In this document: one piece after another, positions 7,555 to 42,470 of the stretch
Layout: every line of letters begins with the position of its first letter
How positions within the stretch are numbered: the stretch's first letter is position 1
Origin: Hyalangium minutum
GTDB lineage: Bacteria; Myxococcota; Myxococcia; Myxococcales; Myxococcaceae
Assembly: GCF_000737315.1 (NCBI RefSeq)
Contig: NZ_JMCB01000005.1
Location: 248,001 to 312,000 of the forward strand
Reading direction: 5' to 3'
DNA: 64,000 bases
The notes under the pieces: generated by a model
What the model was told of the DNA's origin: nothing
The model's database searches: none
Seen by the model: only the letters and a program-made list of their open reading frames with translations
Position numbers and translations under genes: made by a program

Positions 7555-7569
7555 CAGAGAGGAGCCGAC

Positions 7570-10498: not shown

Positions 10499-10526
10499 GG
10501 AGCGCGAGACAGCAGGAGGTGCGGCG

Positions 10527-11507
10527 ATGAGCCTGTTGCAGGTGAAGGGGCTGCGGCGCGACTTTGGCTCGCTGCGCGCGGTAGATGACGTGACGTTCGA
10601 GCTGGCGGCGGGCACCATCCTGGGCTTCATCGGGCCCAACGGCGCGGGCAAGAGCACCACCATGCGCATCATCGCCACGCTGGACACGCCCAGTGCGGGC
10701 GAGGTGCTGCTGGATGGGCAGTCCGTGGTGGACACGCCGGACAAGGCCCGGCCGCTGATCGGCTACATGCCGGACCGCTACGGCACTTATGACGACGTCA
10801 CCGTGTGGGAGTTCCTCGACTTCTTCGCCCGGGCATACGGCCTGAAGGGTGCGGCGCGGAAGAAGCGGGTGGATTCGGTGATGGAGTTCACGGGGCTGGT
10901 TCCACTGAAGGACAAGCTCACCAGCGCGCTGTCCAAGGGCATGCGGCAGCGCGTGGCGCTCGGGCGGACGCTGCTGCATGACCCCAAGCTGCTCATCCTG
11001 GACGAGCCGGCGGACGGCCTGGATCCGCGCGCCCGCATCGAGCTGCGCGAGCTGCTGCGGGCCCTGGCGGATCAGGGCAAGGCGGTCCTCATCTCCAGCC
11101 ACATCCTCACGGAGCTGGCGGAGATCTGCGATACGTGCGCCATCATCGAGCAGGGCAAGCTGCTGGCCACGGGCAAGGTGGCGGACCTGCTGGCGCAGAG
11201 CCAGACGGGGGCCGGCACGGAGCTGACGATCCGGCTGGCGGTGGGCGCGGAGGGCGAGGCGGCCTACGAGCGCGCCGAGCGGGTGGTGCTGGAGCAGCCT
11301 CGGGTGGGGCAGGTGTCGCGAGAGCCTGGGCAGCTGCGCGTGCGGCTGGAACTGGAGGCGGGCGCGACGCGGACCCAAATGGATGAGGCGGCTGCGCGGC
11401 TGCTGGCGGCGCTGGTGACGGCGGGGGTGCCGGTCTGCGCCTTCAGCCACCGGGAGCTGAACCTCGAGGATGCCTTCATGACGGTGACGAAGGGGAGGGT
11501 CGCGTGA
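10527..11507 (+). CDS. ABC transporter ATP-binding protein (ABC-2/DRA type)
   Basis: GPNGAGKSTT, LSKGMRQR, LLILDEPADGLDP, LISSHIL; RBS GGAGGT at 10515-10520 supports ATG 10527. Confidence 0.96.
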   Translation: MSLLQVKGLRRDFGSLRAVDDVTFELAAGTILGFIGPNGAGKSTTMRIIATLDTPSAGEVLLDGQSVVDTPDKARPLIGYMPDRYGTYDDVTVWEFLDFFARAYGLKGAARKKRVDSVMEFTGLVPLKDKLTSALSKGMRQRVALGRTLLHDPKLLILDEPADGLDPRARIELRELLRALADQGKAVLISSHILTELAEICDTCAIIEQGKLLATGKVADLLAQSQTGAGTELTIRLAVGAEGEAAYERAERVVLEQPRVGQVSREPGQLRVRLELEAGATRTQMDEAAARLLAALVTAGVPVCAFSHRELNLEDAFMTVTKGRVA

Positions 11508-12985
11508 GCGCGCCCGTGGAGACCGTGGGGGCCAAGGGCTCGCTCAGCGAGCGGCTGGGAGACCGCATCAACCCCCTGGTGGTGAAGGAGATCCGCCAGG
11601 GCCTGCGCACCCGCATGTTCTGGGTGTGCTTCGGGCTGATGTTGCTGGCGTGCGTGCTGCTGTCGCTGATGGCGTACGCGGACGTGAAGGACGGTGGGTA
11701 CCGGGCGCGCGGGAACACGTACTTCTTCACCTACTTCGTGTGCCTGGGGCTGGTGCACTTCTTCGTCATTCCGTACAGCGCGTACCGCTCGCTGGCGCGC
11801 GAGCGCGAGGACGAGACGTGGGTGTTGCTGGCGCTCACGGGGCTGGGGCCCCGGCGCATCCTGCGGGGCAAGGTGACATCCTTCCTGGCGCAGGCGGCGC
11901 TGTACGCCTCGGCAGTGGGGCCCTTCCTGCTGTTCAGCTACTACCTCAACGGCATCGACCTGCCGACCATCCTCCTGGTGCTGGTGCTAGGGGCAGCGTG
12001 GCTGGTGTTCCTCACGGTGCTCGGGGTGTGCGCGGCGACGCTGGCGGACGCGCGGCTGGGGCGGGCGTTCGTGCACTTCCTGGTGCTGGGCCTGCTGGCC
12101 AGCGGCGTGGCGCAGGGGCTGGGCGGGGCGTTCGCGCTCAGCGAGGGCGGCTCGCGGCTGATGCGCGAGCGCGAGTTCTTCTCCGTCATCGGCGTCGCGC
12201 TGTGGCTGATGCTCAGCTATGGGTGGCTGCTGTTCGAGGCGGCGGCGGCGCGGCTGTCGCTGGTGACGGAGGACTACTCCCGAGGGCCTCGGCGGGCGCT
12301 CATCATTCAGGTGCTGGTGAGCGCGGCGATCGTGGTGGGACTGTGGGCGAATCAGTCACATGAGCGCGAGGTCGCGGTGATAGCTGGCGTGGCCGGGTGC
12401 ATGCACCTGACGCTGTGCGGGCTCTTCGTGGTCTCGGACGTGGATGGACAGGCGCGGGCGCTGCGGTCGTCGACGCGGCCCTGGAGTCTGCTGCGGCCTG
12501 GGGCGGTGCGCGGCTTCCGGCTCATGGTGTTGCTGATCGCGGGCTGGTCCATCTTCTGCGCGCTCTTGGGGCTGAGCTCGGATGACGTGCAGAGCAACTG
12601 GCGCTCGTTGATCTACGTCACCCTGGCGGCGGCTGCATACCCCGTCCTCTACTTCGCGGTGGCCATCCTGGTGGCGAAGATGCCGCGCTCGGATCGGTTG
12701 AGCTCTCCGGCGGCGGTGCGGGTGCTGTTCATATCGCTGGCGGGCCTGGGCGCGGTGCTGCCGCCGCTGTTGGCGCTGCTGGTGGACGAGCCTGCGGACA
12801 ACGGCCTCATCAACCTGCTCAACCCCATCGTGGGCCTGGTGAACTTCGGGCAGCACGACTACGGGACAGATCTGCCGAAGATGACGGTGGAGTTGCTGTG
12901 CTTCGTCTGCGGGGTGGCCGCGCTCGCCGCCTTCGCTGCGGATCGCACCCTGATCGAGCGAGAGCAGCGGGTCCACACCTCGTGA
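11504..12985 (+). CDS. ABC-2 type permease subunit
   Basis: INPLVVKEIRQGLR, LAREREDETWVLLALTGLGPRRILRGKV, more than 10 hydrophobic segments; GTGA overlap with the ATPase. Confidence 0.88.
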   Translation: MSAPVETVGAKGSLSERLGDRINPLVVKEIRQGLRTRMFWVCFGLMLLACVLLSLMAYADVKDGGYRARGNTYFFTYFVCLGLVHFFVIPYSAYRSLAREREDETWVLLALTGLGPRRILRGKVTSFLAQAALYASAVGPFLLFSYYLNGIDLPTILLVLVLGAAWLVFLTVLGVCAATLADARLGRAFVHFLVLGLLASGVAQGLGGAFALSEGGSRLMREREFFSVIGVALWLMLSYGWLLFEAAAARLSLVTEDYSRGPRRALIIQVLVSAAIVVGLWANQSHEREVAVIAGVAGCMHLTLCGLFVVSDVDGQARALRSSTRPWSLLRPGAVRGFRLMVLLIAGWSIFCALLGLSSDDVQSNWRSLIYVTLAAAAYPVLYFAVAILVAKMPRSDRLSSPAAVRVLFISLAGLGAVLPPLLALLVDEPADNGLINLLNPIVGLVNFGQHDYGTDLPKMTVELLCFVCGVAALAAFAADRTLIEREQRVHTS

Positions 12986-13839
12986 GCGCGGCGGACGAGA
13001 GCGAGGTGGCTCGGCTGGCGCCGGGGTTGGCGCTGGCGCTGCCTCGGGTGCCTCACCGGGGGCGGGTAGGCGAGGTGCGCGCCTCGTCCGCGGGCTCCTC
13101 GTTGGAACTGCACGACTTCCGGGTGTACCAGCCTGGGGATGACCTGCGGCAGGTGGACTGGAACGCGGTGGCGCGGACGGGGGAGATCATCCTCCGGGTG
13201 CGGCAGGACGAGGTGTCTCCGCGAGTAGAGGTGCTGGTGGATGCGTCGCGCTCCATGGCGTTGAGCCCGGCGAAGGAGGCGCGAGCGCGGGAGGTGGCGC
13301 TGCTGGCGGTGGAGGTGGCGGCGCTGCAGGGACTGACGCCCACGCTGCTCACCACGAGCGCCCGGCCGGAGCGGACACAGGGGCAGGTGTGCCGCTCGGC
13401 GCTGCGGGCGTCGGCGTTCGATGCGAAGGATGATCTGGGAGCCGCACTCGGGAGGATGCCGCCGCTGCGGCCGTGTGGCCTGCGGGTGGTGGTGAGCGAC
13501 TTCCTCTTCGAGGCGGACTTGTCTGGGCTGATGGCTCGGCTGGCGCGAGGGGCCTCGGCGCTGTTCGTGGTGCAGGTGCTGGACGCGGAGGACCTGGATC
13601 CCACGGGAGGCGAGGGGGCGCGGCTGGTGGACGCGGAGAGCGGCGCGGCGTTGGAGGAACTGCTGACCGAGGACGTGCTGGCCGCCTACGCACGCCGCTT
13701 CGCCGAGCACCAGCGCGCGCTGCGGGCTGCAGCGGCTCGGGCGAGGGCGACCCTGGTGACAGCGCCCGCACCGGAGCGGCTGAGCACGCTGGTGCGAGGC
13801 CCGCTGCGGCCGCTCTTCGTATCGGGAGGAGCGGCGTGA
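12982..13839 (+). CDS. DUF58 family protein (vWA-like)
   Basis: GSSLELHDFRVYQPGDDLRQVDWNAVAR and EVLVDASRSM (DxSxS); GTGA overlap. Confidence 0.92.
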   Translation: MSAADESEVARLAPGLALALPRVPHRGRVGEVRASSAGSSLELHDFRVYQPGDDLRQVDWNAVARTGEIILRVRQDEVSPRVEVLVDASRSMALSPAKEARAREVALLAVEVAALQGLTPTLLTTSARPERTQGQVCRSALRASAFDAKDDLGAALGRMPPLRPCGLRVVVSDFLFEADLSGLMARLARGASALFVVQVLDAEDLDPTGGEGARLVDAESGAALEELLTEDVLAAYARRFAEHQRALRAAAARARATLVTAPAPERLSTLVRGPLRPLFVSGGAA

Positions 13840-15554
13840 GCTTTGGCTTCCCATGGGGGCTGCTGGCGCTGGGGGCGTTGGTGCCACTGGCGGCGGCGTA
13901 CTTCCTGCGGCGGCGGCAGAAGCCGGTGACGGTGAGCGCGCTGTTCCTGTGGCGCACGCCTCGGCCACGCGCGGAGGCGGGTCCGCGCTTCGAGCGCTTC
14001 ACGCGGGAGTCCTCGCTGCTGCTGGAGGCGCTGGCGGTGGTGGCGGCGGCGCTGTTCCTGGCGGACGTGCGCTTCAGCGAGGACACGCGGGCGCGGCACG
14101 TGGTGCTGGTGGTGGATGGGAGCCTCTCGTTGTCGGCGCGAGGGGCGGATGGGGTGACGGTGCTGGAGCGGGTACGCCGGGAGGCGGCCAGGCGGGTGGA
14201 GGAGGAGCGCGCCACGCGGGTGACGGTGCTGGCGAGCGGCTCGGTGCCTCGGGCGATCGCGGGCCCGGAGGCGGAGCCCTCGCGGGCGCTGGGAGCGTTG
14301 GAGTCCTTTCAGGCGCTGGGGGCGGACCACGACGTGACGGCCACGCTGCTGTGGGCGCAGGAACTGGCGGGGCCGGGACGTCGGGTGCACTTCTTCACGG
14401 ACGTGCTGCCAGCCGAGGGTGCGGTGGTGCCTCCGGCGGTGCGGTGGACGGCGCTGGGGACGGTTCGGGACAACGTGGCGCTCGTGTCGGCGCAGCGGCG
14501 GGACGAGGGCACGAAGGCGACGGTGACGCTGCGGGTGGCACGGTTTGGCGGGCCGGACTCGGTGGAGGTGCGGGTACGCGCGCAGCCGGGGCCGGGAGCG
14601 AAGGAGGGGACCGAGCAGCGCGAGGTGGTGCGGCTGCCCACGGAAGGTGCGGCGACTGTGCGCTTCACCTTTGAGAACGCGGGCGATGTGGAGGTGATGT
14701 TGCCGGACGACGCGCTGCCGGAGGATGGGCAGGCTCGGCTGGTGCCCTCGGCGGTGCGTCGGGTGCGTGTGGCGCTGGCGGAGGGACTGGAGCCGCGGAC
14801 GAAGCAGGCGCTGGAGCGCTTCCTATCGGTGGCACCCGATGTGGAGACGGCGGCCGGGGAGGGCGCGCTGATCGTGGGGCCGAGGGGCACGACCGCGAGA
14901 GTGACGGTGGGGGCGGGGGGCACGCTGCGGACATTCCTGGGGCCGTTCTTCTCGGAGAAGGGGCACCCGCTGCTGGACGACGTGCAGCTCGCGGGTGTGC
15001 GGTGGACGGCGGGAGACAATCCACCGGGCCGGGCGCTCATCACGGCGGGGGACGCGGTGCTGCTGGCCGAGGAGGACGGGCGGGTGCACGTCAACCTGGA
15101 ACTGTCGCGTTCGAATCTGCAGCGCACGCCCGCGTGGCCCGTGCTGCTGGGCAACCTGCTGCGCGAGGCCCAGCGCACGCGGGAGGGATTCCCGCGCAGG
15201 CATCTGACGCTGGGAGAGCCCCTGCCGGTGGTGACGCAGCCAGGGGCGCGCTACACGCTGGAGGGCCCGCTGGGAGAGAAGCCAGTCTTCGGAGCGGGCT
15301 CGTTGACCCTGCCTGCGCCGCCCGTGCCGGGCCGCTACACGCTGGAGCGGGATGGAGAGCCGGTGGACGCGACGGAGGTGCTGGCGCTGGACGCACGCGA
15401 GTCGGATCTGCGCGCGAGGAGCAGCGGCGAGCGGGAGGCCACTGCGGCGGAGAAAGAGGAGAGCAGCACGGGCTCATCGAGCCGGGCGCGCTGGCCCCTG
15501 CTGGTGTTGCTGGGAGCGCTGTTGGCGGACTTCTACGTCACACGGCGGAAGTAG
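13836..15554 (+). CDS. BatA-type N-terminal double-TM plus vWA domain protein
   Basis: MSFGFPWGLLALGALVPLAAAYFLRRRQKPVTVSALFLW (BatA N-terminus), VVLVVDGSLSLS MIDAS, C-terminal TM; GTGA overlap. Confidence 0.9.
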   Translation: MSFGFPWGLLALGALVPLAAAYFLRRRQKPVTVSALFLWRTPRPRAEAGPRFERFTRESSLLLEALAVVAAALFLADVRFSEDTRARHVVLVVDGSLSLSARGADGVTVLERVRREAARRVEEERATRVTVLASGSVPRAIAGPEAEPSRALGALESFQALGADHDVTATLLWAQELAGPGRRVHFFTDVLPAEGAVVPPAVRWTALGTVRDNVALVSAQRRDEGTKATVTLRVARFGGPDSVEVRVRAQPGPGAKEGTEQREVVRLPTEGAATVRFTFENAGDVEVMLPDDALPEDGQARLVPSAVRRVRVALAEGLEPRTKQALERFLSVAPDVETAAGEGALIVGPRGTTARVTVGAGGTLRTFLGPFFSEKGHPLLDDVQLAGVRWTAGDNPPGRALITAGDAVLLAEEDGRVHVNLELSRSNLQRTPAWPVLLGNLLREAQRTREGFPRRHLTLGEPLPVVTQPGARYTLEGPLGEKPVFGAGSLTLPAPPVPGRYTLERDGEPVDATEVLALDARESDLRARSSGEREATAAEKEESSTGSSSRARWPLLVLLGALLADFYVTRRK

Positions 15555-21363: not shown

Positions 21364-21409
21364 TGGCAATGCTTGGGAAAATGGGGCTCTTGCTAGCGTG
21401 AGCGCAAAC

Positions 21410-24400
21410 ATGGGCTGCCCCGATGAGAATGCGCTGAGCAACTTCTACGGGGGCCTGCTCCCGGAGGAGCAGAGGGTTGCCATCCTCGCTCACGTGGAGG
21501 GGTGTACCAGCTGTCAGCGGGCGTTGGCGGCGGCGGCGGAGACGGGGACAGCCTCGGATGTGGCGCACGAGGTCTCGGACGGAGGCGCCGCGCTGGCCCG
21601 TGGGGCCACCCTCTCTCGCTACGTGGTGCTCGAGCGGATCGGCCATGGAGCCATGGGCGTGGTGTACGCGGCCTATGATCCAGAGCTGGATCGCCAGGTG
21701 GCCCTCAAGCTGCTGCGCCCTCGGGGACGCCAGTTGGAAGAGCTGCGGCGGAGGCTGCTGCTCGAGGCCCAGTCGCTGGCCCGCCTCTCTCACCCGAACG
21801 TCGTCGCCGTGCATGACGTGGGCACGGCGGGCGATGTCGTCTTCCTGGCCCTGGAGCTGGTGGAGGGCACCTCGCTCGAGCGCTGGATGGCCGAGCCTCG
21901 CCCCTGGCGCGAGGTGCTGCGCGTGTTCCTCGATGCCGGACGGGGACTGACGGCCGCGCACGCGGCGGGCCTGGTGCACCGCGACTTCAAGCCCGCCAAT
22001 GTGCTCCTTGGCAAGGATGGACGGGCGCGGGTGACGGACTTCGGGCTGGCGCGGCCCTCCAACCGTGCGGGTTTGTCCGAGGGCGGCACCGCGCCACGCG
22101 AGGTCTCCGTCGGAGGGCTCGTCTCCTCGAGCTCGGGAGGCCGCCTGCTGGCGGGAACGCCGGCCTATATGTCTCCGGAGCAGCTCCTCGGACAGGGGAT
22201 AGATGCGCTCTCGGATCAGTTCAGCTTCTGTGTGGCTCTCTTCGAGGCCCTCTTCCGTGCGCGGCCCTTCGAGGGGCACGGTGTCGAGGCGCTGACCCGG
22301 AACGTGAGCGAGGGGAAGGTGCGGCCGATTCCTCGCGAGTCGAAGGTTCCGGCCTCGGTCCGCCGCGCGGTGCTGCGAGGGCTCCGTGCCAGGCCCGAGG
22401 AGCGGTTCCCCTCCATGGATACCCTGTTGGAGGCGCTCACCCCGCGCTCCATGAGGGTGCGCACGTGGCTGGCCGCCGCGGGGGTCGCGGTGGGCCTGCT
22501 GGGAGTGCCCGCGGGCTATGTGCTCTCTCACCGGCGCGAGGTGCGCTGCGCGCAGGAGGCGGACAAGCTCGCCGCGGCCTGGAGCCCCGAGCGTCGCGAG
22601 CGGGTGCATGCGGCCTTTCTCGCCACCGGCACGGCTTACGCCCCCGCGGCCTGGGAGAAGTTCTCCGCGGCGCTGGAAGCCCATGCCGCCCAGTGGCGCG
22701 AGCTGCGCACCGAGGCTTGCCTCGCGACGGAGGGCAGCAAGGCGGACACCGCGTGGCAGACGGCCGCGTGCCTGGACAGCCGGCTGTGGCAGCTCGCCGC
22801 CGTCACCGGACTGCTGGAGAAGGCGGACGCGCAGGCGGTGCAGAACTCGCAGCAGCTGCTGGCCTCGCTCGATGGGCTCGCAGGGTGCAAGGAGGCACCG
22901 GCGCTGTCCACCCGGCCGCAGCCGCCGGATGCGCTCCGCCCTCGTGTGGACGAGGCACGGCGCAGGCTGGCCGAGGCCCGGGCCCGCATGGACGCGGGCC
23001 GGCACACCGAGGGCATCGAGCTGACCAAGGCGCTGCTGAAGGACATCCAGGGGCTGGACTACCGCCCGCTGGAGGCGGAGGTGCTCCTGCTGAATGGCCA
23101 GGTCCACGCGCTCGCCGGTAAGCTCAAGGAGGCGGAGGAGAGCCTCTACAAGGCCCTCTGGGCCGCCGAGGCCGGGCGGGATGACGAGACGGTGGCCCGC
23201 GTGTGGAACATGCTCGTCTGGGTGGTGGGGGATCAGCAGGCGCGCGCCAGCGAGGTGGAGCGCATCGTCCAGCACGCCGAGGCCGCGGTGGAGCGCCTGG
23301 GCCGGGATCGCTTCCCCGCCATCGCCATTGATCTCCACCTGAGGATGGGAGGGATGCTGCTGGTGCAGGGCAAGCTGGAGGAGGCGGACGCGGAGTACTC
23401 CCAGGGCCTGGTGCTGTCGCGAAAGGCGGATGCAGGCCCGGAAAGCTCGCGCACGGCCTACTTCCTCTCGGGCCTGGGCCGCGTCCGCAGCCGGCAGAAC
23501 CGCCCCACGGAGGCGCTGGAGCTCTATCGACAGTCCCAGGCGGTGCGTGAGCGCCTCTGGGGACCCGAGCACCCTGCGCAGGCGCTCAGCCTCAACAACA
23601 TCGCCATCGAGCTGCTCGCGCTGGGGCGGCGGGAGGAGGCGATCGCCACGTGGCGCCGTGCCCTGGCGCTGCTGGAGGCCTCGCGCCCGCCGGACCATCC
23701 CAGCTTCGCCGCCCCGCTCATCAACCTCGCCTCGGTGCTTCGCAGCATGGGGCGCTTGGATGAGGCCAAGAAGAACCTGGAGCGTGCCCTGGCCATCTCC
23801 GAGAAGAGCAAGGGACCGGATCATCCCAACACGGCCAGCGCCATCAGTGAGCTGGGGATGGTGGCCTTCGACTCGCAGCGGCTGGACGAGGCCCGTGCCT
23901 ACCACCAGCAGGCGCTGGAGCGCGTTCAGCGGGCGCTGGGGCCGGACACGTCGCGTGCCGCTCCGCTGCTGACCTCTCTGGGCATCATTGATCTGCGCGA
24001 GGGCCGCTACGCCGAGGCCCGGAAAGAGCTGACGCGTGCCCTGCAGCTCTGGGAGAAGGAGGGGGGACCCGATGCCTCCTCGGTCACCCAGGCGCTGCGG
24101 CCGATGGCGCGTCTCGAGGTGGCCACGAGTGCACCGCGCAATGCGCTGGAGCACTGCCAGAGGGCCCTGGCCGTGGATGAGCGGGTGCAGGGCGCCAATG
24201 CCCCGGACGTCGCGCTGGATCTCGCCTGCCTCGCGGAGGGGCACCTGGCCCTGGGCGAGCCGGAGCAGGCCGTGCCGTTGCTGGAGCGGGCCCGGCAGCT
24301 CCACGCGAGTGCCCCGAGGGATCCACTCGATGAGGCCTGGGCTGCTTTTCTGCTGGCCCGGGCGCTCGGTGAGCAGCGGCGTGCGCCAGATCGCACGCGT

Positions 24401-24511
24401 GCGGCGGCGCTGGCCGAGGAGGCGCGCGAGCGCATGGAGAGCCTGGGGCTCCGCGCCCGCGTGGAGCTGAAGCACGTGCTGGCCTGGCAGCGGCGGGGAG
24501 AGGGCCCATGA
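21410..24511 (+). CDS. Ser/Thr kinase with N-terminal zf-HC2 (ZAS) motif, TM helix and C-terminal TPR array
   Basis: C...HVEGCTSC zinc motif; IGHGAMGVVY, VALKLL, LVHRDFKPAN, VTDFGLA, GTPAYMSPE; TM WLAAAGVAVGLLGVPAGYVL; TPR_12-like repeats (GPEHPAQALSLNNIA, GPDHPNTASAISELG). Confidence 0.93.
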   Translation: MGCPDENALSNFYGGLLPEEQRVAILAHVEGCTSCQRALAAAAETGTASDVAHEVSDGGAALARGATLSRYVVLERIGHGAMGVVYAAYDPELDRQVALKLLRPRGRQLEELRRRLLLEAQSLARLSHPNVVAVHDVGTAGDVVFLALELVEGTSLERWMAEPRPWREVLRVFLDAGRGLTAAHAAGLVHRDFKPANVLLGKDGRARVTDFGLARPSNRAGLSEGGTAPREVSVGGLVSSSSGGRLLAGTPAYMSPEQLLGQGIDALSDQFSFCVALFEALFRARPFEGHGVEALTRNVSEGKVRPIPRESKVPASVRRAVLRGLRARPEERFPSMDTLLEALTPRSMRVRTWLAAAGVAVGLLGVPAGYVLSHRREVRCAQEADKLAAAWSPERRERVHAAFLATGTAYAPAAWEKFSAALEAHAAQWRELRTEACLATEGSKADTAWQTAACLDSRLWQLAAVTGLLEKADAQAVQNSQQLLASLDGLAGCKEAPALSTRPQPPDALRPRVDEARRRLAEARARMDAGRHTEGIELTKALLKDIQGLDYRPLEAEVLLLNGQVHALAGKLKEAEESLYKALWAAEAGRDDETVARVWNMLVWVVGDQQARASEVERIVQHAEAAVERLGRDRFPAIAIDLHLRMGGMLLVQGKLEEADAEYSQGLVLSRKADAGPESSRTAYFLSGLGRVRSRQNRPTEALELYRQSQAVRERLWGPEHPAQALSLNNIAIELLALGRREEAIATWRRALALLEASRPPDHPSFAAPLINLASVLRSMGRLDEAKKNLERALAISEKSKGPDHPNTASAISELGMVAFDSQRLDEARAYHQQALERVQRALGPDTSRAAPLLTSLGIIDLREGRYAEARKELTRALQLWEKEGGPDASSVTQALRPMARLEVATSAPRNALEHCQRALAVDERVQGANAPDVALDLACLAEGHLALGEPEQAVPLLERARQLHASAPRDPLDEAWAAFLLARALGEQRRAPDRTRAAALAEEARERMESLGLRARVELKHVLAWQRRGEGP

Positions 24512-25398
24512 GCGAGTCAGGAGACCGGGGTGCCCTCTCGGCGCTCATGAGGACCCACGTGTCCCCGGAGCGGCGCGCCGCGCTGGACCTTGTGGAGGGA
24601 CTGGAGGCCCTGCTGCGAGGGCACCACGCGGCGGGACAGGCCCAGTGGCCGTCGGTGCCGCTGAGCCCGGAGCGCTTCGTGAAGCACCTGGCCCGGCACA
24701 TGCCCGAGGGTTCGGGGGAGGCACTGCGTTCGCTCCACGCCGCGGATCTCTACCTGGCTTGTGCTTGCTCTGACGGAGAGCCTCGTGGGCTCCAAGCCTT
24801 CGAGCAGCACATCCTCCGGCGAGTCCCCTCGCGGCTGGGACAGCTCGCGGACTTCACCGTGGATGATGTCCTGCAGGAGCTCCGCCAGCGGCTGCTGGTG
24901 GGCCGAGGCGACGCGCCGCCTCGCATCGCTGACTACTCGGGCCGGGGGCCGCTCCTGGCATGGGTGCGCATCATCGCCACGCGCATCGTGGGCGAGCTGG
25001 CGCACCAGCAAGGGCGCCAGGTGCTCTTCGACGAGCCGCCCGAGGTGCTCGCCCGGATGCTGGCCTCGAGTGATCCGGAGCGCGAGCTGCTCCGCGAGGA
25101 CACCCGACAGGCCCTCACCGAGGCGCTCCGCAACGCCCTGGTGGCGCTCTCCGATAAGGATCGCGCCCTGCTGCGCCTGCACCACCTCCACGGCCTCACC
25201 ATGGACCGGCTCTCGGCGATGTACGGCGAGTCCCGCTCGGGCGTGGCGCGCCGGGTGGCGCAGGCCCGCGAGCGGCTGATGGAGCTCACGCGCAAGGATC
25301 TGGCCTCGCGGCTGAACCTGGGCGGCACGGAAGTGGAGAGCCTGCTCGAGCTGGTGCAGAGCCGTCTGGACCTCAGCCTCCAAGGGTTGTTGGGGTAG
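24508..25398 (+). CDS. Myxobacterial ECF-type sigma-70 factor (Myxococcales family)
   Basis: LHAADLYLACAC, DDVLQELRQRLLV, IADYSGRGPLLAWVR (region 2) and LLRLHHLHGLTMDRLSAMYGESRSGVARRV (region 4 HTH); ATGA overlap with the kinase. Confidence 0.85.
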   Translation: MSESGDRGALSALMRTHVSPERRAALDLVEGLEALLRGHHAAGQAQWPSVPLSPERFVKHLARHMPEGSGEALRSLHAADLYLACACSDGEPRGLQAFEQHILRRVPSRLGQLADFTVDDVLQELRQRLLVGRGDAPPRIADYSGRGPLLAWVRIIATRIVGELAHQQGRQVLFDEPPEVLARMLASSDPERELLREDTRQALTEALRNALVALSDKDRALLRLHHLHGLTMDRLSAMYGESRSGVARRVAQARERLMELTRKDLASRLNLGGTEVESLLELVQSRLDLSLQGLLG

Positions 25399-25591: not shown

Positions 25592-26500
25592 ATGGCGCGC
25601 CCGATGTGGAAGGGCTCGGTCAACTTTGGTCTCGTGAACGTTCCGATCCGGATGTACCGGGCGGTCTCTCCGCGGGACGTGCGCTTCCATCAGCTCCACG
25701 CCAAGGACAAGGCACGCATCCGCGAGCGGCGCATCTGCGAAGCCGAGGGCACCGAGGTCCCCTACGACGAGATCATCAAAGGCTACGAGATCAGCAAGGG
25801 CGTCTACGTCACCATCACGCCCGAGGAGCTCAAGGCGCTGGCGCCCAAGGGCACCTACGCCATCGATATCGAGGACTTCGTTCCCTCGAATGACATCCAC
25901 CCGCTCTTCTATGACGCCCACTATCACCTGGTGCCGGAGACGAACGCCGCGCGTGCGTACGCACTGCTGAGCCAGGCGCTGGAGAGCTCCGGGCGGATTG
26001 GCGTGGGGCGCGTGGTGCTGAGGACGAAGCAGTACACCTGCGCCGTGCGGCCCAACGGGCCGGGGTTGATGCTCTCGTTGATGAACAGCGTGGACGAGGT
26101 GCTTCCGCTGGAGCAGATCGACGGGATGCCCTCGCACATGCCCAAGGTGAACGCACGCGAGCTGGCCACGGCTGAGCAGCTCATCGAGTCGCTCAGTGCT
26201 CCGTTCGATCCCGAGAAGTACCGGGACGTCTACCGCGAGCAGCTCGAAGAGGTGCTGAAGCAGAAGGCGGGCGGCGTGGAGATCCGCCCGTCGCCTGCGG
26301 CCGAGCCGGAGTACAGCGCCCCGGCGAATCTGATGGAGGCCCTGAAGAAGAGCCTCGCGGCCGCGAAGCGCACGCGGGACCGGGAGGAGGAGGCCACCAA
26401 GCCCCAACGCGCCACCCGCGCCACGCGCACCTCGGGGACGCGCCGGGTCCGCTCACAGGCCGCGGCCCGCACGGCCCGGAGCCGCAAGAAGAAGTCCTGA
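25592..26500 (+). CDS. ku: Non-homologous end-joining protein Ku
   Basis: MARPMWKGSVNFGLVNVPIRMY, VPYDEIIKGYE, AIDIEDFV, FDPEKYRDVYREQL, NLMEALKKSL, basic tail; RBS AAGGAGGT before ATG 25592. Confidence 0.95.
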   Translation: MARPMWKGSVNFGLVNVPIRMYRAVSPRDVRFHQLHAKDKARIRERRICEAEGTEVPYDEIIKGYEISKGVYVTITPEELKALAPKGTYAIDIEDFVPSNDIHPLFYDAHYHLVPETNAARAYALLSQALESSGRIGVGRVVLRTKQYTCAVRPNGPGLMLSLMNSVDEVLPLEQIDGMPSHMPKVNARELATAEQLIESLSAPFDPEKYRDVYREQLEEVLKQKAGGVEIRPSPAAEPEYSAPANLMEALKKSLAAAKRTRDREEEATKPQRATRATRTSGTRRVRSQAAARTARSRKKKS

Positions 26501-26614
26501 GTCCGGCTGCTCGTGCCTGGCTCTGGAGCAAGCGGGATGACCCGGGGCTGCCGTCACAGGTGGGCCCGGGGCTCTCCTTCTCGATGACCCCCAAGTCGTC
26601 CAAGGAGACGCACG

Positions 26615-26797
26615 ATGAGCAACCCCAAGAACCAGAACCTCGCCCCCCGTGACACCCTGAGCATTACCAACGGCCAGTCGCTGATCGAGCTCGAGCCCGA
26701 GCAGCTGCGGGCCGTCGTCGGTGGCACGAGGAAGAACCCGAAGATCGACGTGACCGTGAAGCCGGACGGCACCATCATCATCAAGGTGAACCCCTAG
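26615..26797 (+). CDS. 60-aa peptide with double-glycine leader (bacteriocin/RiPP/pheromone precursor-like)
   Basis: RBS AAGGAG; strong GC3 codon bias; leader ends ELEPEQLRAVVGG; 23-aa core TRKNPKIDVTVKPDGTIIIKVNP. Confidence 0.75.
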   Translation: MSNPKNQNLAPRDTLSITNGQSLIELEPEQLRAVVGGTRKNPKIDVTVKPDGTIIIKVNP

Positions 26798-26799
26798 CG

Positions 26800-26816
26800 C
26801 ACCGCCGTCGGCGGTG
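26800..26816 (+). terminator. GC hairpin right after the peptide gene (no U-tract; terminator or stabiliser)
   Basis: CACCGCC-GTC-GGCGGTG. Confidence 0.4.
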
Positions 26817-26915
26817 GGTGTTCGTGCCGCGCCCACCGCCGGCAGTGGCTCGAAAGCCAGATCCCCATGGGGGCGACGGGGCTTGGACGTAGTAGAGTGC
26901 CCGCCACTCGTCTTC

Positions 26916-29657
26916 ATGAGCTTCTCCCTGCCTCAGGCGCTGGTGTTGCTCGTGCCCCTCGGGCTCTTCCTCTGGAAGCGCGGGGCACGCCCGGGTCCGC
27001 CCATGCCCTTGCGGTGGGGCCTGCTGGTGCTCGCCGTGGCCGCGCTCGCCGGGCCCGAACTGCTGCTGCGCGACGCGGGGAGTGATGTGGTGGTGGTGGT
27101 CGATCGCTCGCGCTCCATGCCACTGGACGCGGACCGTGTCGCCCTGGAGCTGGTGAAGCTGCTGGAGGCCCAACGCCGTCCAGGGGACCGGCTGGGCGTC
27201 ATCACCTTTGGACGCGAGGCGCGGGTGGAGCAGCCGCCGAGCGCCGCGGGCTCCTTTGGAGGCTTCTCGCGGCCGGTGGATGTGGATGCCTCGGATCTCT
27301 CGGCGGCGCTGGATGCGGCGGCCGCGCTGATTCCCGCGGAGCGCACGGGCCGGGTGCTCGTGGTGTCGGACGGGCGGAGCACGGGAGCGGATGCCCGGGG
27401 AGCGGCCCGGAGGCTGGCGGCCCGAGGCATCGCCGTGGACTTCCGCCAGGTGGCCCGCGAGGAGGTGCCGCTGGACCTGGCCGTCGTCTCGGTGGATGTG
27501 CCGTCGGCGGTGGCGGTGCGCGAGCCCTTCCAGTTCTCCGCCGTGGTGTTCGCCTCGGGCGCCGTCACCGGCACGGTGAAGCTGGAGCGCAGCGGCCAGC
27601 TCCTGGTGAAGGGGCCCTATGACTTCCGGCCGGGCAACAACGTGCTGCCCTTCCGGGATCTCATCGAGAAGGAGGGCCTGGCCAGCTACCGGCTCACGGT
27701 GGAGGCACCCGGAGATGGCGTGGTGGAGAACGACGAGGGCCGCGCGGTGCTGCGCGTCGAGGGCCCGCCCCGGGTGCTGGTGCTGACCCGGCAGCCGAAG
27801 GGGGCCCTGGCCCAGGCCTTGGAGGCCGCGGGGATGCGGCTGGAGGTGCGCGAGCCCTTCCCCGTCTCGTTGGATGCGCTGGATGGCGTGGCGTCGGTGG
27901 TGCTGGAGAACGTGGACGCCAACGCCCTGGGCGAGCCTGGATTGAACGCGCTGGCCTCGTACGTGGAGCAGGCGGGCGGTGGGCTGGTGATGACGGGCGG
28001 GCGGGACAGCTTCGGGCAGGGAGGCTACCGGCGCTCACCGCTGGAGCCAGTGCTGCCAGTGTCCCTGGAGCTGCGCGAGGAGCAGCGTCGCACGGCCATC
28101 GCCATGAGCGTGCTGATGGATTGCAGCTGCTCCATGGGCGTCAACGTGCCGGATGGGCGCACGAAGATGGAGGTGGCTGCCGAGGGTGTGGTGGGCGCGC
28201 TCACGCTCCTCAACGACAATGACGAGGCCTCCGTCCACATGGTGGACACGGAGAGCCACGAGATCTTCCCGCTGAGCCCGGTGAGCGAGGGGCTCCCGCT
28301 GGGCAAGGTGGCGCGAGGCTTCAGCGGCGGCGGCGGCATCTACGTGGGCGAGGCGCTGCGCACCGGGAAGAAGGAGATCCTCCAGAGCGAGAAAGTGACC
28401 CGGCACGTGCTGCTCTTCTCGGACGCGGCGGACTCCGAGGCGCCGGACGACTACAAGGCGACCATCTCCGCACTGCGCAGGGCGAACGTGACGGTGTCCG
28501 TCATCGGGCTCGGCACGCCGAAGGACTCGGACGCAAAGCTGCTGCAGGAGGTGGCCGCGCTGGGCGGCGGGCGCATGTACTTCGCCCAGGACGCCATGAG
28601 CCTGCCGCGCATCTTCAGCCAGGAGACCATCACCGTGGCGCGCTCGGCCTTCGTGGACGTGCCTACCTCCCTGGAGGCCGCGCCGGATCTGCCGCTGCTC
28701 GGGAAGCTCTCGCCGCAGGGGCTTCCGCAGGCGGGCGGCTACAACCTCACGTACCTCAAGCCGGGTGCGAACGTGGCGCTGCGGACGCTGGACGAGAACG
28801 CCGCGCCCCTGCTGGCCATGTGGCCGCGCGGCTCCGGCCGCTCGGTGGCCTTCATGGGCGAGGTGGATGGGGAGTTCAGCGGTGAGCTTCGCCAGTGGAG
28901 CGGCCTGCGCGCGGCGGTGGAGAGCATGGTGCGCTGGTCCATGGCCGGCGGTGGCAAGCCCGAGGGCGAGGCGGTGGCGCGAGCGGAGCGGCAGGGCAAC
29001 CTGCTGCGCGTGACGTTGGACCTCGCGCCCGGGGAGCCGATGCCCACGGCGCTGCCCTCACTGGTGGTGCTCCCGGGCGATGGCAGCTCCGCGCCGGTGG
29101 AAGTGCCGATGCGCTGGGAGGATGAGGACCGGCTCTCGGCCGAGTACCCGCTGCCGGGACGCGGCACGTGGCACCCGGTGGTGAAGCTGGGCGCAAGGGC
29201 CCTGCGCGCACCGCCCGTGGCGCTGCCGTACGCGCCGGAGTTCGAGCCGGGCAGCCCGAAGGAGGGGCTCGCGGTGCTGCGCGCGGTGGCGGCGGTAGGC
29301 GGAGGCGTGGAGCGGCTCTCCATGGCAGAGCTGTTCAAGGATGCGCCGGTGTCCGAGGGGCGCGTGGCGCTCGCGCCTTGGCTGGTGGGGTTCGCGGTGC
29401 TGGTGCTGCTGGCGGAGGTGGTGGTGCGCCGGTTCTTCTCCACGCCTCGGTTGCGCAAGCTGGCTCCCGCGAAGGTGCCAGGGCTGGCCGAGGCTCCCGC
29501 TGGCGCGGCGCGCAGCCCCGAGCAACCCCGAGAGGCTCCGTCCACGCAGCCTGGGGCGGACGAAGGCGCGAAGGCCGCTCCGGAGAAGCCGGACGGCAAT
29601 GTGGACTCGGCGCTGGAGGCTGCCCGCGCCCGCTCCCGCAAGCGCCTGGGCCGCTGA
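26916..29657 (+). CDS. Membrane protein with two vWA domains and a GATase1-like (DUF1355-type) domain
   Basis: MSFSLPQALVLLVPLG N-terminal TMs; MIDAS VVVVDRSRSM and SVLMDCSCSM; LASYVEQAGGGLVMTGGRDSFGQGGY; C-terminal TM. Confidence 0.9.
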   Translation: MSFSLPQALVLLVPLGLFLWKRGARPGPPMPLRWGLLVLAVAALAGPELLLRDAGSDVVVVVDRSRSMPLDADRVALELVKLLEAQRRPGDRLGVITFGREARVEQPPSAAGSFGGFSRPVDVDASDLSAALDAAAALIPAERTGRVLVVSDGRSTGADARGAARRLAARGIAVDFRQVAREEVPLDLAVVSVDVPSAVAVREPFQFSAVVFASGAVTGTVKLERSGQLLVKGPYDFRPGNNVLPFRDLIEKEGLASYRLTVEAPGDGVVENDEGRAVLRVEGPPRVLVLTRQPKGALAQALEAAGMRLEVREPFPVSLDALDGVASVVLENVDANALGEPGLNALASYVEQAGGGLVMTGGRDSFGQGGYRRSPLEPVLPVSLELREEQRRTAIAMSVLMDCSCSMGVNVPDGRTKMEVAAEGVVGALTLLNDNDEASVHMVDTESHEIFPLSPVSEGLPLGKVARGFSGGGGIYVGEALRTGKKEILQSEKVTRHVLLFSDAADSEAPDDYKATISALRRANVTVSVIGLGTPKDSDAKLLQEVAALGGGRMYFAQDAMSLPRIFSQETITVARSAFVDVPTSLEAAPDLPLLGKLSPQGLPQAGGYNLTYLKPGANVALRTLDENAAPLLAMWPRGSGRSVAFMGEVDGEFSGELRQWSGLRAAVESMVRWSMAGGGKPEGEAVARAERQGNLLRVTLDLAPGEPMPTALPSLVVLPGDGSSAPVEVPMRWEDEDRLSAEYPLPGRGTWHPVVKLGARALRAPPVALPYAPEFEPGSPKEGLAVLRAVAAVGGGVERLSMAELFKDAPVSEGRVALAPWLVGFAVLVLLAEVVVRRFFSTPRLRKLAPAKVPGLAEAPAGAARSPEQPREAPSTQPGADEGAKAAPEKPDGNVDSALEAARARSRKRLGR

Positions 29658-32123: not shown

Positions 32124-34205
32124 TTAGGAGAGGGGAGGGTGCTCCCCCTCCGCCTTGATTTCCGCCGAGGGAGGGTGCCGCACCGGGAGCTGGAGCACGA
32201 ACGTTGCCCCCTCACCCGGGTGGCTCTCGACATGAATCGTCCCGCCGTGGGACTCGACGATCTGCCGGGCCAGGAACAGCCCCAGGCCCAGCCCTCCATA
32301 CCGATTGGACGACACCGCGCGCTCAAAGCGCTCGAAGATGCGCTCCAGCGCCTCGGGCTCGATGCCGATGCCGTGATCCGTCACCGCGATGCGCACCCAA
32401 GGGCCCACACCCGAGACGTGGACCTCGATGGGCTGCCCCGCCCCGAACTTGAGCGAGTTTGCCAGCAGGTTGGCGAGCGCCTGCTCGACGCGGCCTCGGT
32501 CCCACCACGCAACGAGGCCTGTCTGGGCCTCCACCTTCAGCGTGACGCCCGCCCTCCGGGCCTCCTCGCTGAAGCCTTCCACCACCTGTTCGACCAGCTC
32601 GTGCACTTCCACGCGCTCCGGATGGAGCTCCATCCGGCCCGTGGTGATTCGGCCCACATCCAGCAGGCGCTCGACGAGCTGGCCCAGGCGCCCGAGCTGG
32701 CGTGACGCCGCGCGGAGCTTCTCGTGGGCCTCGTCGGAGGCTCGCTCCCGCTGGAGCAGCCCCTCCAGGCTCCGCATGCGCAGCGTGAGCGCCGTCAACG
32801 GCGTGCGCAGCTCGTGGGCGGCAATGGCGATGAACTCGTTGCGCACCTCGATGGCCTGGCGCGCCTCCTCATAGAGACGCGCGTTCTCCAGGGCCATGCT
32901 GAAACGGTGGGCCAGGTCCTCGGCCAGCCGGAGGTCCGTGGTGCCAGCGCACCGGGTCAACTCGTCGCTCATGAGCACGAGCGCGCCCTTCGCGCTGCCG
33001 TGCACCCACAGCGGTGCCAACACCACCGTGCCCTCCTCGGTATGCCAGCGCCGCGAGGCCGTGGGCAGGGGCGGCAGTGCACCGCGCACGCGTGCCTCTC
33101 GCTCCGGGCTCCACCCCGCCTGGACAATGCGCTCCAGCAGCCCGTTCTCACCCTCCAGCCACACCGCGAACCCGGTGCACGTATGAGGCACGACGAGCCG
33201 GGCCACGCGTGGAATCGTCTCGCGGACGTCCAGCGAGGCAGCCAGCACCGCGCCCGCATCCACCAGGAGCTGCTGGAGACGCTCGGCCCGGCGCCTCTCG
33301 GAGACCACCGCGGCCAGCATCAGCGCCATCATGGAGAGGATCGTCAGGAAGATCTGAAGGGTGAGCACCTCCTGGAGTGCGGACGTGTGCAGGGTGCCGA
33401 AGGGGCCTCGGCCGAGCAGGGTGTGCCAGACCGCGAAGAACGCCACCACGGCCGAGGCGCTCGCGCCGCCCAGGGGGCCCAGCCGCAGCGCACCCCACAT
33501 GACGAAGGCGAAGCTGACATAGGCCAGCGAGGCCCAGACTCCCGAGGCCGAGGGCTGCGCGAAGATGAGGTTCGCGCTCAGCGCCGTCAAGGTGAGCATC
33601 GCCACCAGCTCCATCAGGCGCCGGAAACGGCCGGGTGAGAGAACCGTGGAGGACCAGGTTAGCAGCAGCGGCGCTACCAGCATCGTCCCCAGTCCATCGC
33701 TCAGCCACCAGATCACCCAATGGCTCAGGGAGAAGGATCCCTGCCATACGAGAATGCCGAGCCCTCCCAGCGTGGCGCTGGCGATGGGGCTCACCAGGCC
33801 TCCGAAGAGGAGCAACCCGGCCACCTCCCAGCTCCGGGAGAGCCGGATGGAGGTGCCTACGAAGCGCCGCATCAACCACGCGCCCCACAGCGAGCGCAGG
33901 CAGTTGCCCAGGCTCCAGAGGAGGGCGGTGCCCAGAGGAATGCCGGTCTTATGGAGCAGCACCGAGGCGAACTCCGCCACGAAGATGGCGGTGAGCAAGA
34001 CAGGCCACTCCCGAGGAGATGCCCGCATGAGGAAGACGAGCGAGAGTCCGCTCGGCAGCCAGAGCAGGGCATTCGGAGTCGGAGGAAAGACGAACCGCAC
34101 GGCCAGCAGGCCCAGTGCGAAGAAGCTCACTCCGAGCACCAGCGCACGGAGCCAGAGTGTCTTCTGCTGCGAGCCCTTCAGGCCAAGGTTCAAGGAGAGT
34201 GCCAT
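32124..34205 (-). CDS. MASE1-GAF sensor histidine kinase (orphan)
   Basis: MASE1 TMs (WLPSG, WWLSDGLG), GAF (LRLAEDLAHRFSMALENARLY), H-box AAHELRTPLT, N box NLLANSLKF, DHGIGI, GLGLGLF. Confidence 0.93.
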   Translation of the reverse strand: MALSLNLGLKGSQQKTLWLRALVLGVSFFALGLLAVRFVFPPTPNALLWLPSGLSLVFLMRASPREWPVLLTAIFVAEFASVLLHKTGIPLGTALLWSLGNCLRSLWGAWLMRRFVGTSIRLSRSWEVAGLLLFGGLVSPIASATLGGLGILVWQGSFSLSHWVIWWLSDGLGTMLVAPLLLTWSSTVLSPGRFRRLMELVAMLTLTALSANLIFAQPSASGVWASLAYVSFAFVMWGALRLGPLGGASASAVVAFFAVWHTLLGRGPFGTLHTSALQEVLTLQIFLTILSMMALMLAAVVSERRRAERLQQLLVDAGAVLAASLDVRETIPRVARLVVPHTCTGFAVWLEGENGLLERIVQAGWSPEREARVRGALPPLPTASRRWHTEEGTVVLAPLWVHGSAKGALVLMSDELTRCAGTTDLRLAEDLAHRFSMALENARLYEEARQAIEVRNEFIAIAAHELRTPLTALTLRMRSLEGLLQRERASDEAHEKLRAASRQLGRLGQLVERLLDVGRITTGRMELHPERVEVHELVEQVVEGFSEEARRAGVTLKVEAQTGLVAWWDRGRVEQALANLLANSLKFGAGQPIEVHVSGVGPWVRIAVTDHGIGIEPEALERIFERFERAVSSNRYGGLGLGLFLARQIVESHGGTIHVESHPGEGATFVLQLPVRHPPSAEIKAEGEHPPLS

Positions 34206-34335
34206 TCCTGTCCTTCCCTCGAAGGCTATGCCTTCAATCCGCAAGCTGCCCCCCTGGGGAACACGGATCAGAGAGGGACGATCGCCTCCCTGCCTGAAGG
34301 GGTGGCGGTCCGGAATGGCCTGCCGGGCAGGGGCC

Positions 34336-35571
34336 CTAGGGTTCGCTGGAGACCGCTGGCGGTTGGTAGGTGGCCTTCGGATCCACCTCGGCCGCGTAGG
34401 CACTGTTCCATGTGTCCGAGAAGAAGCGCTCCAGCTGCTGGGCGAAGGCCGTGCCCTCGATGATCAGGCCCACGTTGCGCGTCTGGGTGAAGTAGTCGCG
34501 CTCCCAGTTGCTCGTGCCCACCCAGGCGGCCTCGCCATCCACCACCATGTACTTGGCGTGCACCACGCGCGCGAAGGGGATGAAGCCGCCGGACCAGCGG
34601 GGGATGGTGACGAGCTTCACGGTGAGCCCGGGCGGAGCGTGGAGCGCCTGAAGCCCTTCGATGGTGCCCGAGCGCTTGCTCCAGTCCGCCACCATCAGCT
34701 CCACCTTTACCCCGCGGGCGCTGGCCCGCTTCAGCGCGTCCTCCAGCTCGTGGAACTCGCTCCCGTCGCGAGCGCGGGCCCGGTAGGTGAGGACCTGCAC
34801 GCGCACGGAGCGCTTCGCCCCATCGATGAGCTCCACCAGCCGAGGCAGATCCCACGTGGTGGGGTCCGGCAGGTAACCCTGAGGGCTGAAGACGGGCGTC
34901 ACGCGCACCGTCTCTCCGCCGAAGGAGACGGGGAGCGGCCCGGGCACTTTCTCCGTGGAGGCAGGGGGCGAGCCACCCGCCGCCAGAGTCCAGTCGAGCT
35001 CGAAGATGGTACCGAGGGCCCGCACCACCTCGGGCACGCGCACGCGGAGGCCGAGCTCCTGGATGTGCTCGAGCGAGCGCCAGTCGAAGTTCTGGCTGCC
35101 GAAGTACGCCTCGCGCCCATCCACGATGAAGTACTTGGCGTGCTGCACTCCGCCCATGGACTTGGCCGTGTCCATTCGGCGCACCTCGACGCGGCGGGCC
35201 GCCAGCCGTTCCAGGGTCTCCGGGTACTGCTTCACGAACTTCTCGTCCACGAGCAGCCGCACTCGCACGCCGCGAGCCGCTGCGGCCTCGATGGCCTCAA
35301 TGACGGGCTCCAACCGGCTGCCGGGCGCGTTGCTCACATAGAACTGCTCGATCTCCAAGGTGCGCGCGGCCGCGCCGATCATCTCCGGCCAGACGCGCCA
35401 CGCATCGGGGATGTCCGCATGGTCCAGCGCCGTCTCCACCGGGCTGCTCTCCACGAGCACCAGCCCGGGTTCAGCGGAGGCGGTGGTGGCTTCAGAGGTG
35501 AGCGGATGCGGCGAGGAGGTGGCGCACGCGAGCGAGAGGCACGCGCTGAGCAGCAGGAGGCGCAGGGACAT
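34336..35571 (-). CDS. Phospholipase D family lipoprotein
   Basis: Lipobox LSLAC; two HxKxxxxD motifs, HAKYFIVD and HAKYMVVD. Confidence 0.92.
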   Translation of the reverse strand: MSLRLLLLSACLSLACATSSPHPLTSEATTASAEPGLVLVESSPVETALDHADIPDAWRVWPEMIGAAARTLEIEQFYVSNAPGSRLEPVIEAIEAAAARGVRVRLLVDEKFVKQYPETLERLAARRVEVRRMDTAKSMGGVQHAKYFIVDGREAYFGSQNFDWRSLEHIQELGLRVRVPEVVRALGTIFELDWTLAAGGSPPASTEKVPGPLPVSFGGETVRVTPVFSPQGYLPDPTTWDLPRLVELIDGAKRSVRVQVLTYRARARDGSEFHELEDALKRASARGVKVELMVADWSKRSGTIEGLQALHAPPGLTVKLVTIPRWSGGFIPFARVVHAKYMVVDGEAAWVGTSNWERDYFTQTRNVGLIIEGTAFAQQLERFFSDTWNSAYAAEVDPKATYQPPAVSSEP

Positions 35572-42400: not shown

Positions 42401-42470
42401 GAGAATTTCTCTCCGCTTGAGAGTGACTTGCCCAGGTTTTCGTCCGATTCGAGAATCAAGTTGCGCGATG

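Follow-up and report, generated by a model that had tools for sequence, protein, structure and literature searches.

The peptides closest to the one described here are the cargo of peptidase-containing ABC transporters (PCATs), or ABC transporter maturation and secretion (AMS) systems, that is, class II bacteriocins, colicin V-type microcins and ComC, whose leaders end in GG and have hydrophobic residues at positions -4, -7, -12 and -15 and acidic residues around positions -8, -9 and -13. A second point of comparison is the EbfG1-4/PteB system of Synechococcus elongatus PCC 7942, in which small GG-motif proteins are secreted via a C39-peptidase transporter and enable biofilm formation (PMC4997328). 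Here, we describe a 60-codon gene located in a 64,000-nt stretch (hereafter the window) of the genome of the myxobacterium Hyalangium minutum DSM 14724T (JMCB01000005.1, GCA_000737315.1; JMCB00000000: PMC5441343). The gene is likely to be a functional, independently transcribed precursor gene of a small exported peptide, with a Cys-free amphipathic hairpin core, that would be processed in trans by a PCAT. Its product resembles PCAT/AMS cargo in the leader positions listed above, in its short, cationic and probably unmodified core, in that its relatives adjoin C39-ABC and HlyD genes, and in its weak, leader-only matches to known models. It differs from such cargo in that the core of its family is conserved in two phyla rather than hypervariable and has no Pfam or NCBIfam match, in that the Hyalangium locus contains neither an immunity gene nor a linked exporter, and in that the leader, at 37 aa, has a variable polar N-terminal extension. 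In the EbfG/PteB system of this Gram-negative phototroph, the role is not an antibiotic one, and a matrix or surface function of conserved GG peptides thus has a precedent; the cyanobacterial members of the H. minutum peptide family also adjoin a PCAT gene. However, ebfG is adjacent to pteB whereas the H. minutum gene is unlinked from an exporter, and the two systems are compared here by description.

The precursor gene and its parts are located as follows (positions in the window):

26615-26797, + strand: precursor peptide gene, 60 codons plus TAG, read from the sequence
26602-26608, + strand: ribosome-binding site AAGGAGA, 6 nt 5′ of the ATG, invariant across nine orthologous loci
26615-26725, + strand: double-glycine leader, residues 1-37, with a polar, variable N-terminus followed by SLIELEPEQLRAVVGG; predicted cleavage after G37 (between 26725 and 26726)
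26726-26794, + strand: predicted mature 23-aa core, with the hairpin at residues 43-59 (26741-26791)

The full 60-residue product of the open reading frame (ORF) is MSNPKNQNLAPRDTLSITNGQSLIELEPEQLRAVVGGTRKNPKIDVTVKPDGTIIIKVNP, that is, the leader MSNPKNQNLAPRDTLSITNGQSLIELEPEQLRAVVGG followed by the core TRKNPKIDVTVKPDGTIIIKVNP. The GC contents of the three codon positions (GC1/2/3) are 0.54/0.38/0.93, a profile that corresponds to the typical coding pattern in DNA of 69% GC. Two overlapping antisense ORFs (26554-26784 and 26453-26917), with GC1/2/3 values of 0.53/0.53/0.82 and 0.79/0.61/0.60, were dropped on the basis of codon-position GC and conservation pattern. A search against 5.8 billion proteins identified 19 close homologues (E = 1e-11 to 1e-28). 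Indels among the orthologues are all in frame, and differences in length are restricted to the N-terminal third, which is nearly unconstrained (pN/pS = 0.8). The leader helix and the core, on the other hand, show dN/dS values of 0.05-0.25 among the closer orthologues, indicating purifying selection. Only this helix-plus-core partition of close orthologues was used, given that dN/dS over the whole gene (0.2-1.5) is uninformative owing to the lack of constraint on the N-terminal third and to the GC3 bias, which compresses dS. The ORF is thus a genuine, conserved gene. An initial annotation, made from the sequence alone, had noted the 60-codon ORF with its ribosome-binding site, strong GC3 bias and downstream hairpin, and all of these were seen again, with a GC3 of 0.93, an invariant ribosome-binding site and a hairpin that covaries among orthologues. 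The limits it gave (26615-26816) do not hold together with these features, since the ribosome-binding site lies 5′ of that start and the hairpin extends beyond that end, to 26847. Its suggestion that gene annotation could miss the peptide was not borne out either: the ORF is already called in the NCBI record and is present in UniRef as a hypothetical protein (P0001 cluster), and every one of the named relatives is annotated as "hypothetical protein".

A profile search of the 5.8-billion-protein set yielded 65 proteins matching the family profile, and the family statistics given here rest on the 62 of them that were aligned. In the leader of the H. minutum peptide, the positions of interest are L-15, E-13, L-12, E-11, E-9, L-7, V-4 and GG-2/-1, and the GG site reads VVGG/T (residues 34-37/38). 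L-7, G-2 and G-1 are present in all 62 family leaders, as are an acidic residue (E/D) at -13, L, I or M at -12, and V or I at -4, while position -15 is hydrophobic. On this alignment the H. minutum leader is a genuine double-glycine leader, because the residues that never vary in the 62 homologues occupy the positions that C39 peptidases recognise. The match to the double-glycine consensus that had been proposed from E-13, L-12, L-7, V-4 and GG-2/-1 is therefore upheld, as is the conservation of the GG site itself (62/62). Two further proteins bear on the leader. In one (P0026), the same leader precedes an unrelated core that contains Cys, so that the leader is shown to be a transferable module. 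The other, a metagenomic protein of 481 aa (P0024), contains about eight tandem cassettes, each made up of a IELSEEDLEAIVGG-type double-glycine leader, a short core containing Cys and an NHNETL motif, and appears to be a polyprecursor of repeated leader-core units.

The 23-aa core has a side-chain charge of +3, contains no Cys and has a monoisotopic mass of 2545.496 Da. AlphaFold2, run with the family alignment, predicts two strands (residues 43-48 and 54-59) around the KPDGT motif with a predicted local distance difference test score (pLDDT) of about 85, whereas the leader is predicted to be disordered. One face of the predicted hairpin is all Ile/Val (I44, V46, V48, I54, I56 and V58) and the opposite face is polar and cationic; the KPDGT motif is accounted for by a type I turn with a G1 bulge. 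The size, charge, lack of Cys and strand-turn-strand arrangement described beforehand, with strands around a PDG turn, were thus found again. Across the family, the cores follow the motif [VI]x[VI]KPDGT[IV][IV][IV], in which Ile and Val alternate on both sides of the turn; they are 18-29 aa long (mode 20), usually have a net charge of +2, and lack Cys in every case (0/62). D-G-T is invariant in the 62 aligned cores, P-1 is present in 57 of them, and K is nearly invariant. Conservation of the core equals that of the leader, also when Myxococcota are compared with Cyanobacteria, and the conserved leaders with variable cores that had been expected are not seen.

Evidence on processing comes from the relatives that are linked to an exporter. 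In Stigmatella sp. ncwal1 (locus L010), the family peptide (P0023) is encoded 57 bp from a convergent gene for a 742-aa protein with the domains Peptidase_C39, ABC_membrane and ABC_tran, i.e. a PCAT. This PCAT gene is accompanied by two HlyD-type genes, and on the other side of the P0023 gene lies an 85-aa lanthipeptide-type GG precursor (TIGR03898). No LanM was found within 10 kb of this locus (9530-14340), which keeps one LanA-like precursor and the exporter. An uncultured Stigmatella-like relative (L019/L020) has the same layout around its peptide (P0055), with a PCAT that is 87% identical; here the region 5779-14281 forms a class II lanthipeptide cluster including LanM (TIGR03897, 1016 bits), two TIGR03898 precursors, the hairpin peptide, the PCAT and two HlyD genes. 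In Nostoc sphaeroides (CP045226.1; L017/L018, 6893-15626), the peptide gene (P0059) is convergent with an operon encoding a PpiC-type rotamase, HlyD and a cNMP-C39-ABC protein, and it is preceded by two precursors with Nif11 leaders and by a TIGR04103 radical-SAM maturase of the nif11 class. These Nif11-leader precursors carry repeated PLYGV motifs, and such YG-repeat precursors may resemble spliceotide-type substrates. The linked PCATs keep the C39 active-site motifs Q..CG, H[FY][VI]V and DP. In all linked loci the peptide gene is convergent with the exporter operon, in two phyla and with two unrelated chemistries of peptides that are made ribosomally and modified post-translationally (RiPPs). 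The association follows the transporter and not one class of modifying enzyme. It is this persistence of the linkage that speaks most strongly for the peptide being cargo of the exporter, with no need of a dedicated modifying enzyme. In an earlier survey, the LanT of S. aurantiaca was listed with only HlyD nearby (PMC3951391).

At the H. minutum locus itself, Pfam searches of the ten largest ORFs and tblastn with a PCAT query detected no PCAT, HlyD or modifying enzyme in the window, in agreement with the initial annotation. In the same window, no second GG-leader-like ORF with coding-type GC3 was found. A PCAT is encoded elsewhere in the genome: KFE69668.1/WP_044187054.1 (P0216), a 740-aa protein with C39, ABC_membrane and ABC_tran domains, is the orthologue of the Stigmatella PCAT, to which it is 78% identical over the full length, and it keeps the catalytic motifs QLSETECGAAC, HFVVFE and VDPG (Cys/His/Asp). 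It was recovered as a member of the P0080 cluster and is not named among the best 120 PCAT matches. KFE69668.1 is encoded on a contig of 540,313 bp, and the peptide gene on a separate contig of 504,291 bp. Both a family peptide and an orthologue of the PCAT are also present in H. gracile and H. versicolor; in H. gracile, the only one of the two in which the position was verified, the peptide gene is at the locus between the genes for Ku and a VWA protein described below, on another contig than the PCAT. Moreover, a metagenomic Hyalangium-type locus (L022) contains an HlyD-HlyD-PCAT arrangement with no GG-peptide ORF within 10 kb, which fits an exporter that serves unlinked substrates. The PCAT of the latter locus (10001-13093) is called as a 1030-aa protein in which the frame changes near residue 600 and continues; this is probably an assembly frameshift and not a real fusion. 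Thus, adjacency to PCAT/HlyD operons with intact active sites is a feature of relatives in two phyla, and the peptide genes are unlinked from such operons at the Hyalangium loci examined (Ku/VWA). Processing of the H. minutum peptide in trans by the orthologous PCAT, as had been suggested, is well supported by the orthology, and the simplest reading is that peptide gene and exporter locus parted in the Hyalangium lineage, with the exporter continuing to process the peptide in trans.

The family is rare, since only two loci with a member were found in 185,579 species-representative genomes. When 1.84 billion representative proteins were searched exhaustively with the profile, eight matches were obtained, and a metagenome scan with a subset of the alignment gave seven loci, including four new loci of the Ku/VWA type and one short, low-GC contig. 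The contigs of three further members (P0020, P0022 and P0025) are too short for an informative context. The family has members among the myxobacteria (Archangiaceae) and the cyanobacteria (Nostocales), the named sources being Hyalangium sp., H. gracile, H. versicolor, Stigmatella sp. ncwal1 (S. ashevillena), S. aurantiaca DW4/3-1, a Myxococcaceae metagenome-assembled genome, Nostoc sphaeroides and Nostoc sp. There is apparently one copy per genome, either linked to the exporter (Stigmatella, Nostoc) or at the Ku/VWA locus (Hyalangium-type).

No Pfam or NCBIfam model matched the core of the H. minutum peptide or of any of the 62 members. The only matches to these collections were weak and restricted to the leader (ComC, bacteriocin_sig and Bacteriocin_IIc, with ComC in 3 of the 62 members), and one family member had a weak match to a GRASP-target model. 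A search of the PDB gave chance-level matches (best E = 0.08). Full-text literature searching for KPDGTI returned nothing relevant, with one unrelated paper on African swine fever virus, and the motif is absent from the cyanobacterial bacteriocin survey of Wang et al. 2011 and its supplements. Precursors of the mersacidin/lichenicidin type (TIGR03898) and of the Nif11 type (TIGR03798) share with the hairpin peptide a terminal helix-GG module and the same exporter locus in L010, L019 and L017. Unlike these, the hairpin peptide has no IIRAWKDP or Nif11 leader domain and no Cys, matches neither model, and is tied to the exporter across different RiPP chemistries. More specifically, the H. minutum leader, of 37 aa and with a low-complexity N-terminus, gave no match to PF07862, TIGR03798 or the NHLP models, and assignment to the class II LanA precursors finds no TIGR03898 match, no Cys in the 62 members and no LanM in the window. 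Tachyplesin, protegrin, thanatin and arenicin are disulfide-stabilised cationic hairpins of eukaryotic host defence with another biogenesis. The H. minutum core is like them in having about 20 residues and a cationic, amphipathic, two-stranded hairpin, but the cross-strand disulfides of such hairpin antimicrobials are impossible in a family in which Cys occurs in 0/62 members, and the likeness is one of analogy only. The peptide is the first-described member of a beta-hairpin family for which no model exists, within a kind of PCAT cargo that is already known.

The sequences flanking the gene contain three further elements, as follows:

26515-26521 and 26554-26560, + strand: upstream blocks GCCTGGC and TCACAGG, conserved in nine orthologous Ku-peptide intergenic regions in which the bases around them vary
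26572-26608, + strand: stem-loop of the 5′ untranslated region (UTR), in which (C)TCTCCTT (26572-26579) pairs with the Shine-Dalgarno AAGGAGA (26602-26608), with an inner stem GATGA/TCGTC
26802-26847, + strand: GC-rich terminator-like hairpin 3′ of the stop codon, with a 15-bp core (26807-26843)

The GCCTGGC and TCACAGG blocks may serve the peptide gene as a promoter or operator. A consensus scan found no match to a sigma-70 promoter upstream of the gene; by eye, a sigma-54 promoter was rejected because the spacing of the TGGC...GCA block is wrong, and a promoter of the extracytoplasmic function (ECF) type because the upstream blocks are spaced too widely. The 5′ UTR contains a conserved element, CTCTCCTT, that is complementary to the invariant AAGGAGA and is kept in nine orthologues. 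RNAalifold predicted a stem of 12 pairs, in which the changes are all one-sided and pair-preserving, with no compensatory double changes, and the fold of the single sequence has an energy of -20.1 kcal/mol (z = -1.67); this is weak evidence that the stem-loop may sequester the ribosome-binding site and control translation. The downstream hairpin has a predicted energy of -40.4 kcal/mol (z = -3.58) and shows compensatory double changes in 8 of 16 pairs among the nine orthologues. No U-tract terminator was called at this position by a consensus scan, which misses the hairpin because a U-tract is absent. The hairpin ends about 70 nt 5′ of the start of the VWA gene (26916) and would close a monocistronic unit. 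The conserved ribosome-binding site, the upstream blocks, the covarying hairpin and the in-frame constraint together make the peptide gene look like a self-contained transcription unit.

In at least 10 distinct loci, the peptide gene sits between a Ku gene and a gene for a VWA/GATase1-like protein of about 920 aa, and at some of these loci one extra gene is inserted on either side of it. In the window, a gene for a 1037-aa Ser/Thr kinase with TPR repeats overlaps by 4 nt a gene for a 296-aa sigma-70 region-4 protein, and Ku follows (21398-25398 and 25592-26500, both on the + strand). The kinase/sigma-70 region-4/Ku trio is syntenic in most Ku-type loci and is absent from H. gracile. A MASE1 histidine kinase is encoded on the opposite strand (32124-34463, - strand), 5 kb downstream of the peptide gene, and is present at every Ku/VWA-type locus. 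Further downstream (40673-42526, - strand), a 617-aa protein combines LysM, Peptidase_C39_2, PG_binding_1 and GH19 chitinase/lysozyme-like domains and looks like a secreted wall hydrolase, possibly a predatory lysin. It is the only C39-like match in the window and was rejected as a local processing enzyme: as a wall hydrolase without an ABC part, it is not a PCAT.

In the mechanism that we propose, the leader would form an amphipathic helix, with L-15, L-12, L-7, V-4, G-2 and G-1, that docks in the C39 domain of the PCAT, which would cut after Gly37. The PCAT, together with HlyD-type adaptors and an outer-membrane channel, would then export the unmodified 23-mer, and the best candidate for this exporter in H. 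minutum would be the unlinked KFE69668.1. Outside the cell, the hairpin would act via its Ile/Val face on membranes, on surfaces or by self-association; these options are suggested by the perfectly amphipathic character of that face. The antimicrobial or signalling role put forward initially is no more than a possibility, and cleavage and expression are presumed. What had been observed in the sequence was confirmed, and the interpretation placed on it is partly supported. Conservation of the core to the same degree as the leader argues against a fast-diversifying bacteriocin and suggests that the structure constrains it or that its partner or target is itself conserved.

Several points weigh against an exported, unmodified peptide processed in trans. 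PCAT adjacency is seen in only two independent lineages, given that Stigmatella sp. ncwal1 and its uncultured relative represent one and Nostoc the other. LanA and Nif11 GG precursors share those loci, and the exporter may primarily serve them. Orthology is the sole ground on which KFE69668.1 would be paired with the peptide. Conservation of the core across phyla is unlike what is seen in classical bacteriocins and would leave the extracellular activity among several options, and the invariant Thr, Asp and Lys could be sites of modification. The last point leads to a modified RiPP precursor whose enzyme is encoded elsewhere, for example with dehydration of Thr by a LanM or with a radical-SAM or other modification at K-P-D-G-T, which we consider quite unlikely. 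Relatives do lie inside a LanM cluster and a Nif11/radical-SAM cluster, D, G and T are invariant with K and P nearly so, and one member has the weak GRASP-target match. However, the lack of Cys throughout the family means that no lanthionine is possible, the same core is found in two contexts with unrelated chemistries, L010 has no LanM within 10 kb and no modifying enzyme lies close to the Hyalangium loci, and the KPDGT motif is fully explained by the hairpin turn predicted by AlphaFold2. A peptide pheromone or induction factor, i.e. a PCAT-cleaved cationic peptide of about 20 aa that a histidine kinase would detect and that would regulate social behaviour or the making of RiPPs or bacteriocins, on the model of the class II GG induction peptides and ComC, is also unlikely, though it fits several observations. 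The length of 18-29 aa, the positive charge and the absence of Cys and of modification match induction peptides, three members have the weak leader-only ComC matches, and conservation of the core is more easily squared with a conserved receptor than with an arms race. As regards a sensor, genes for a hybrid kinase and for a response regulator of the LuxR type lie within 5-9 kb of the peptide in L019, and the MASE1 kinase accompanies every Ku/VWA-type locus; at no locus examined, however, is a kinase or regulator adjacent to the peptide gene or co-transcribed with it, and the MASE1 kinase, on the opposite strand, is separated from it by a variable number of genes in a region that is syntenic throughout, so that the linkage is uninformative. 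Furthermore, such peptides usually split into pherotypes, whereas the core is near-identical from Nostoc to Hyalangium.

Two readings without an exported product were also weighed. The ORF could encode an intracellular small protein, or be a leader ORF that, with the terminator, attenuates the VWA gene, as the strong hairpin between the two genes and the possible Shine-Dalgarno-sequestering 5′ stem might suggest. Attenuation was rejected, and this reading as a whole is very improbable, because it is the peptide sequence itself that is conserved, because the peptide is found in loci with no VWA gene or with a gene between it and the VWA gene, and because the invariant leader residues match those of PCAT recognition and would be needless for attenuation. 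It is equally hard to believe that the gene is a decaying relic, left functionless by its separation from the exporter locus: the absence of a linked PCAT in the Hyalangium lineage would agree with this, but at least 10 Ku/VWA-type loci keep the frame, the ribosome-binding site, the leader recognition residues, the core and the terminator, dN/dS is low, and the orthologous PCAT is retained in the H. minutum genome. An unmodified peptide exported in trans is thus the reading that we retain. A bolder form of it, which we put forward tentatively and hold to be rather unlikely, is that the KPDGT hairpins are a phylum-spanning unmodified PCAT cargo that travels with RiPP exporters and is not a bacteriocin. 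They would instead serve as a self-assembling or surface-coating matrix, biofilm or interface factor, or as a conserved cue, which in Hyalangium would have lost its link to the exporter locus and become, under its own promoter and a possible Shine-Dalgarno-sequestering 5′ UTR, a free-standing factor in social behaviour or development.

The double-glycine peptides that Gram-negative bacteria make have been little explored, and precursors that are unlinked from their exporter escape cluster-based genome mining. The 60-aa precursor and the PCAT KFE69668.1 form a concrete, testable pair in a culturable myxobacterium, and the new family of about 62 sequences has a simple diagnostic motif and is common to two gliding, multicellular groups, the Archangiaceae and the Nostocales. 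The exporter link across unrelated RiPP chemistries, together with the conserved core, suggests a role other than strain-level warfare. Should the 23-mer prove to be antimicrobial, it would offer a short, Cys-free and easily synthesised scaffold; should it be self-assembling or signalling, the known roles of PCAT cargo would be widened.

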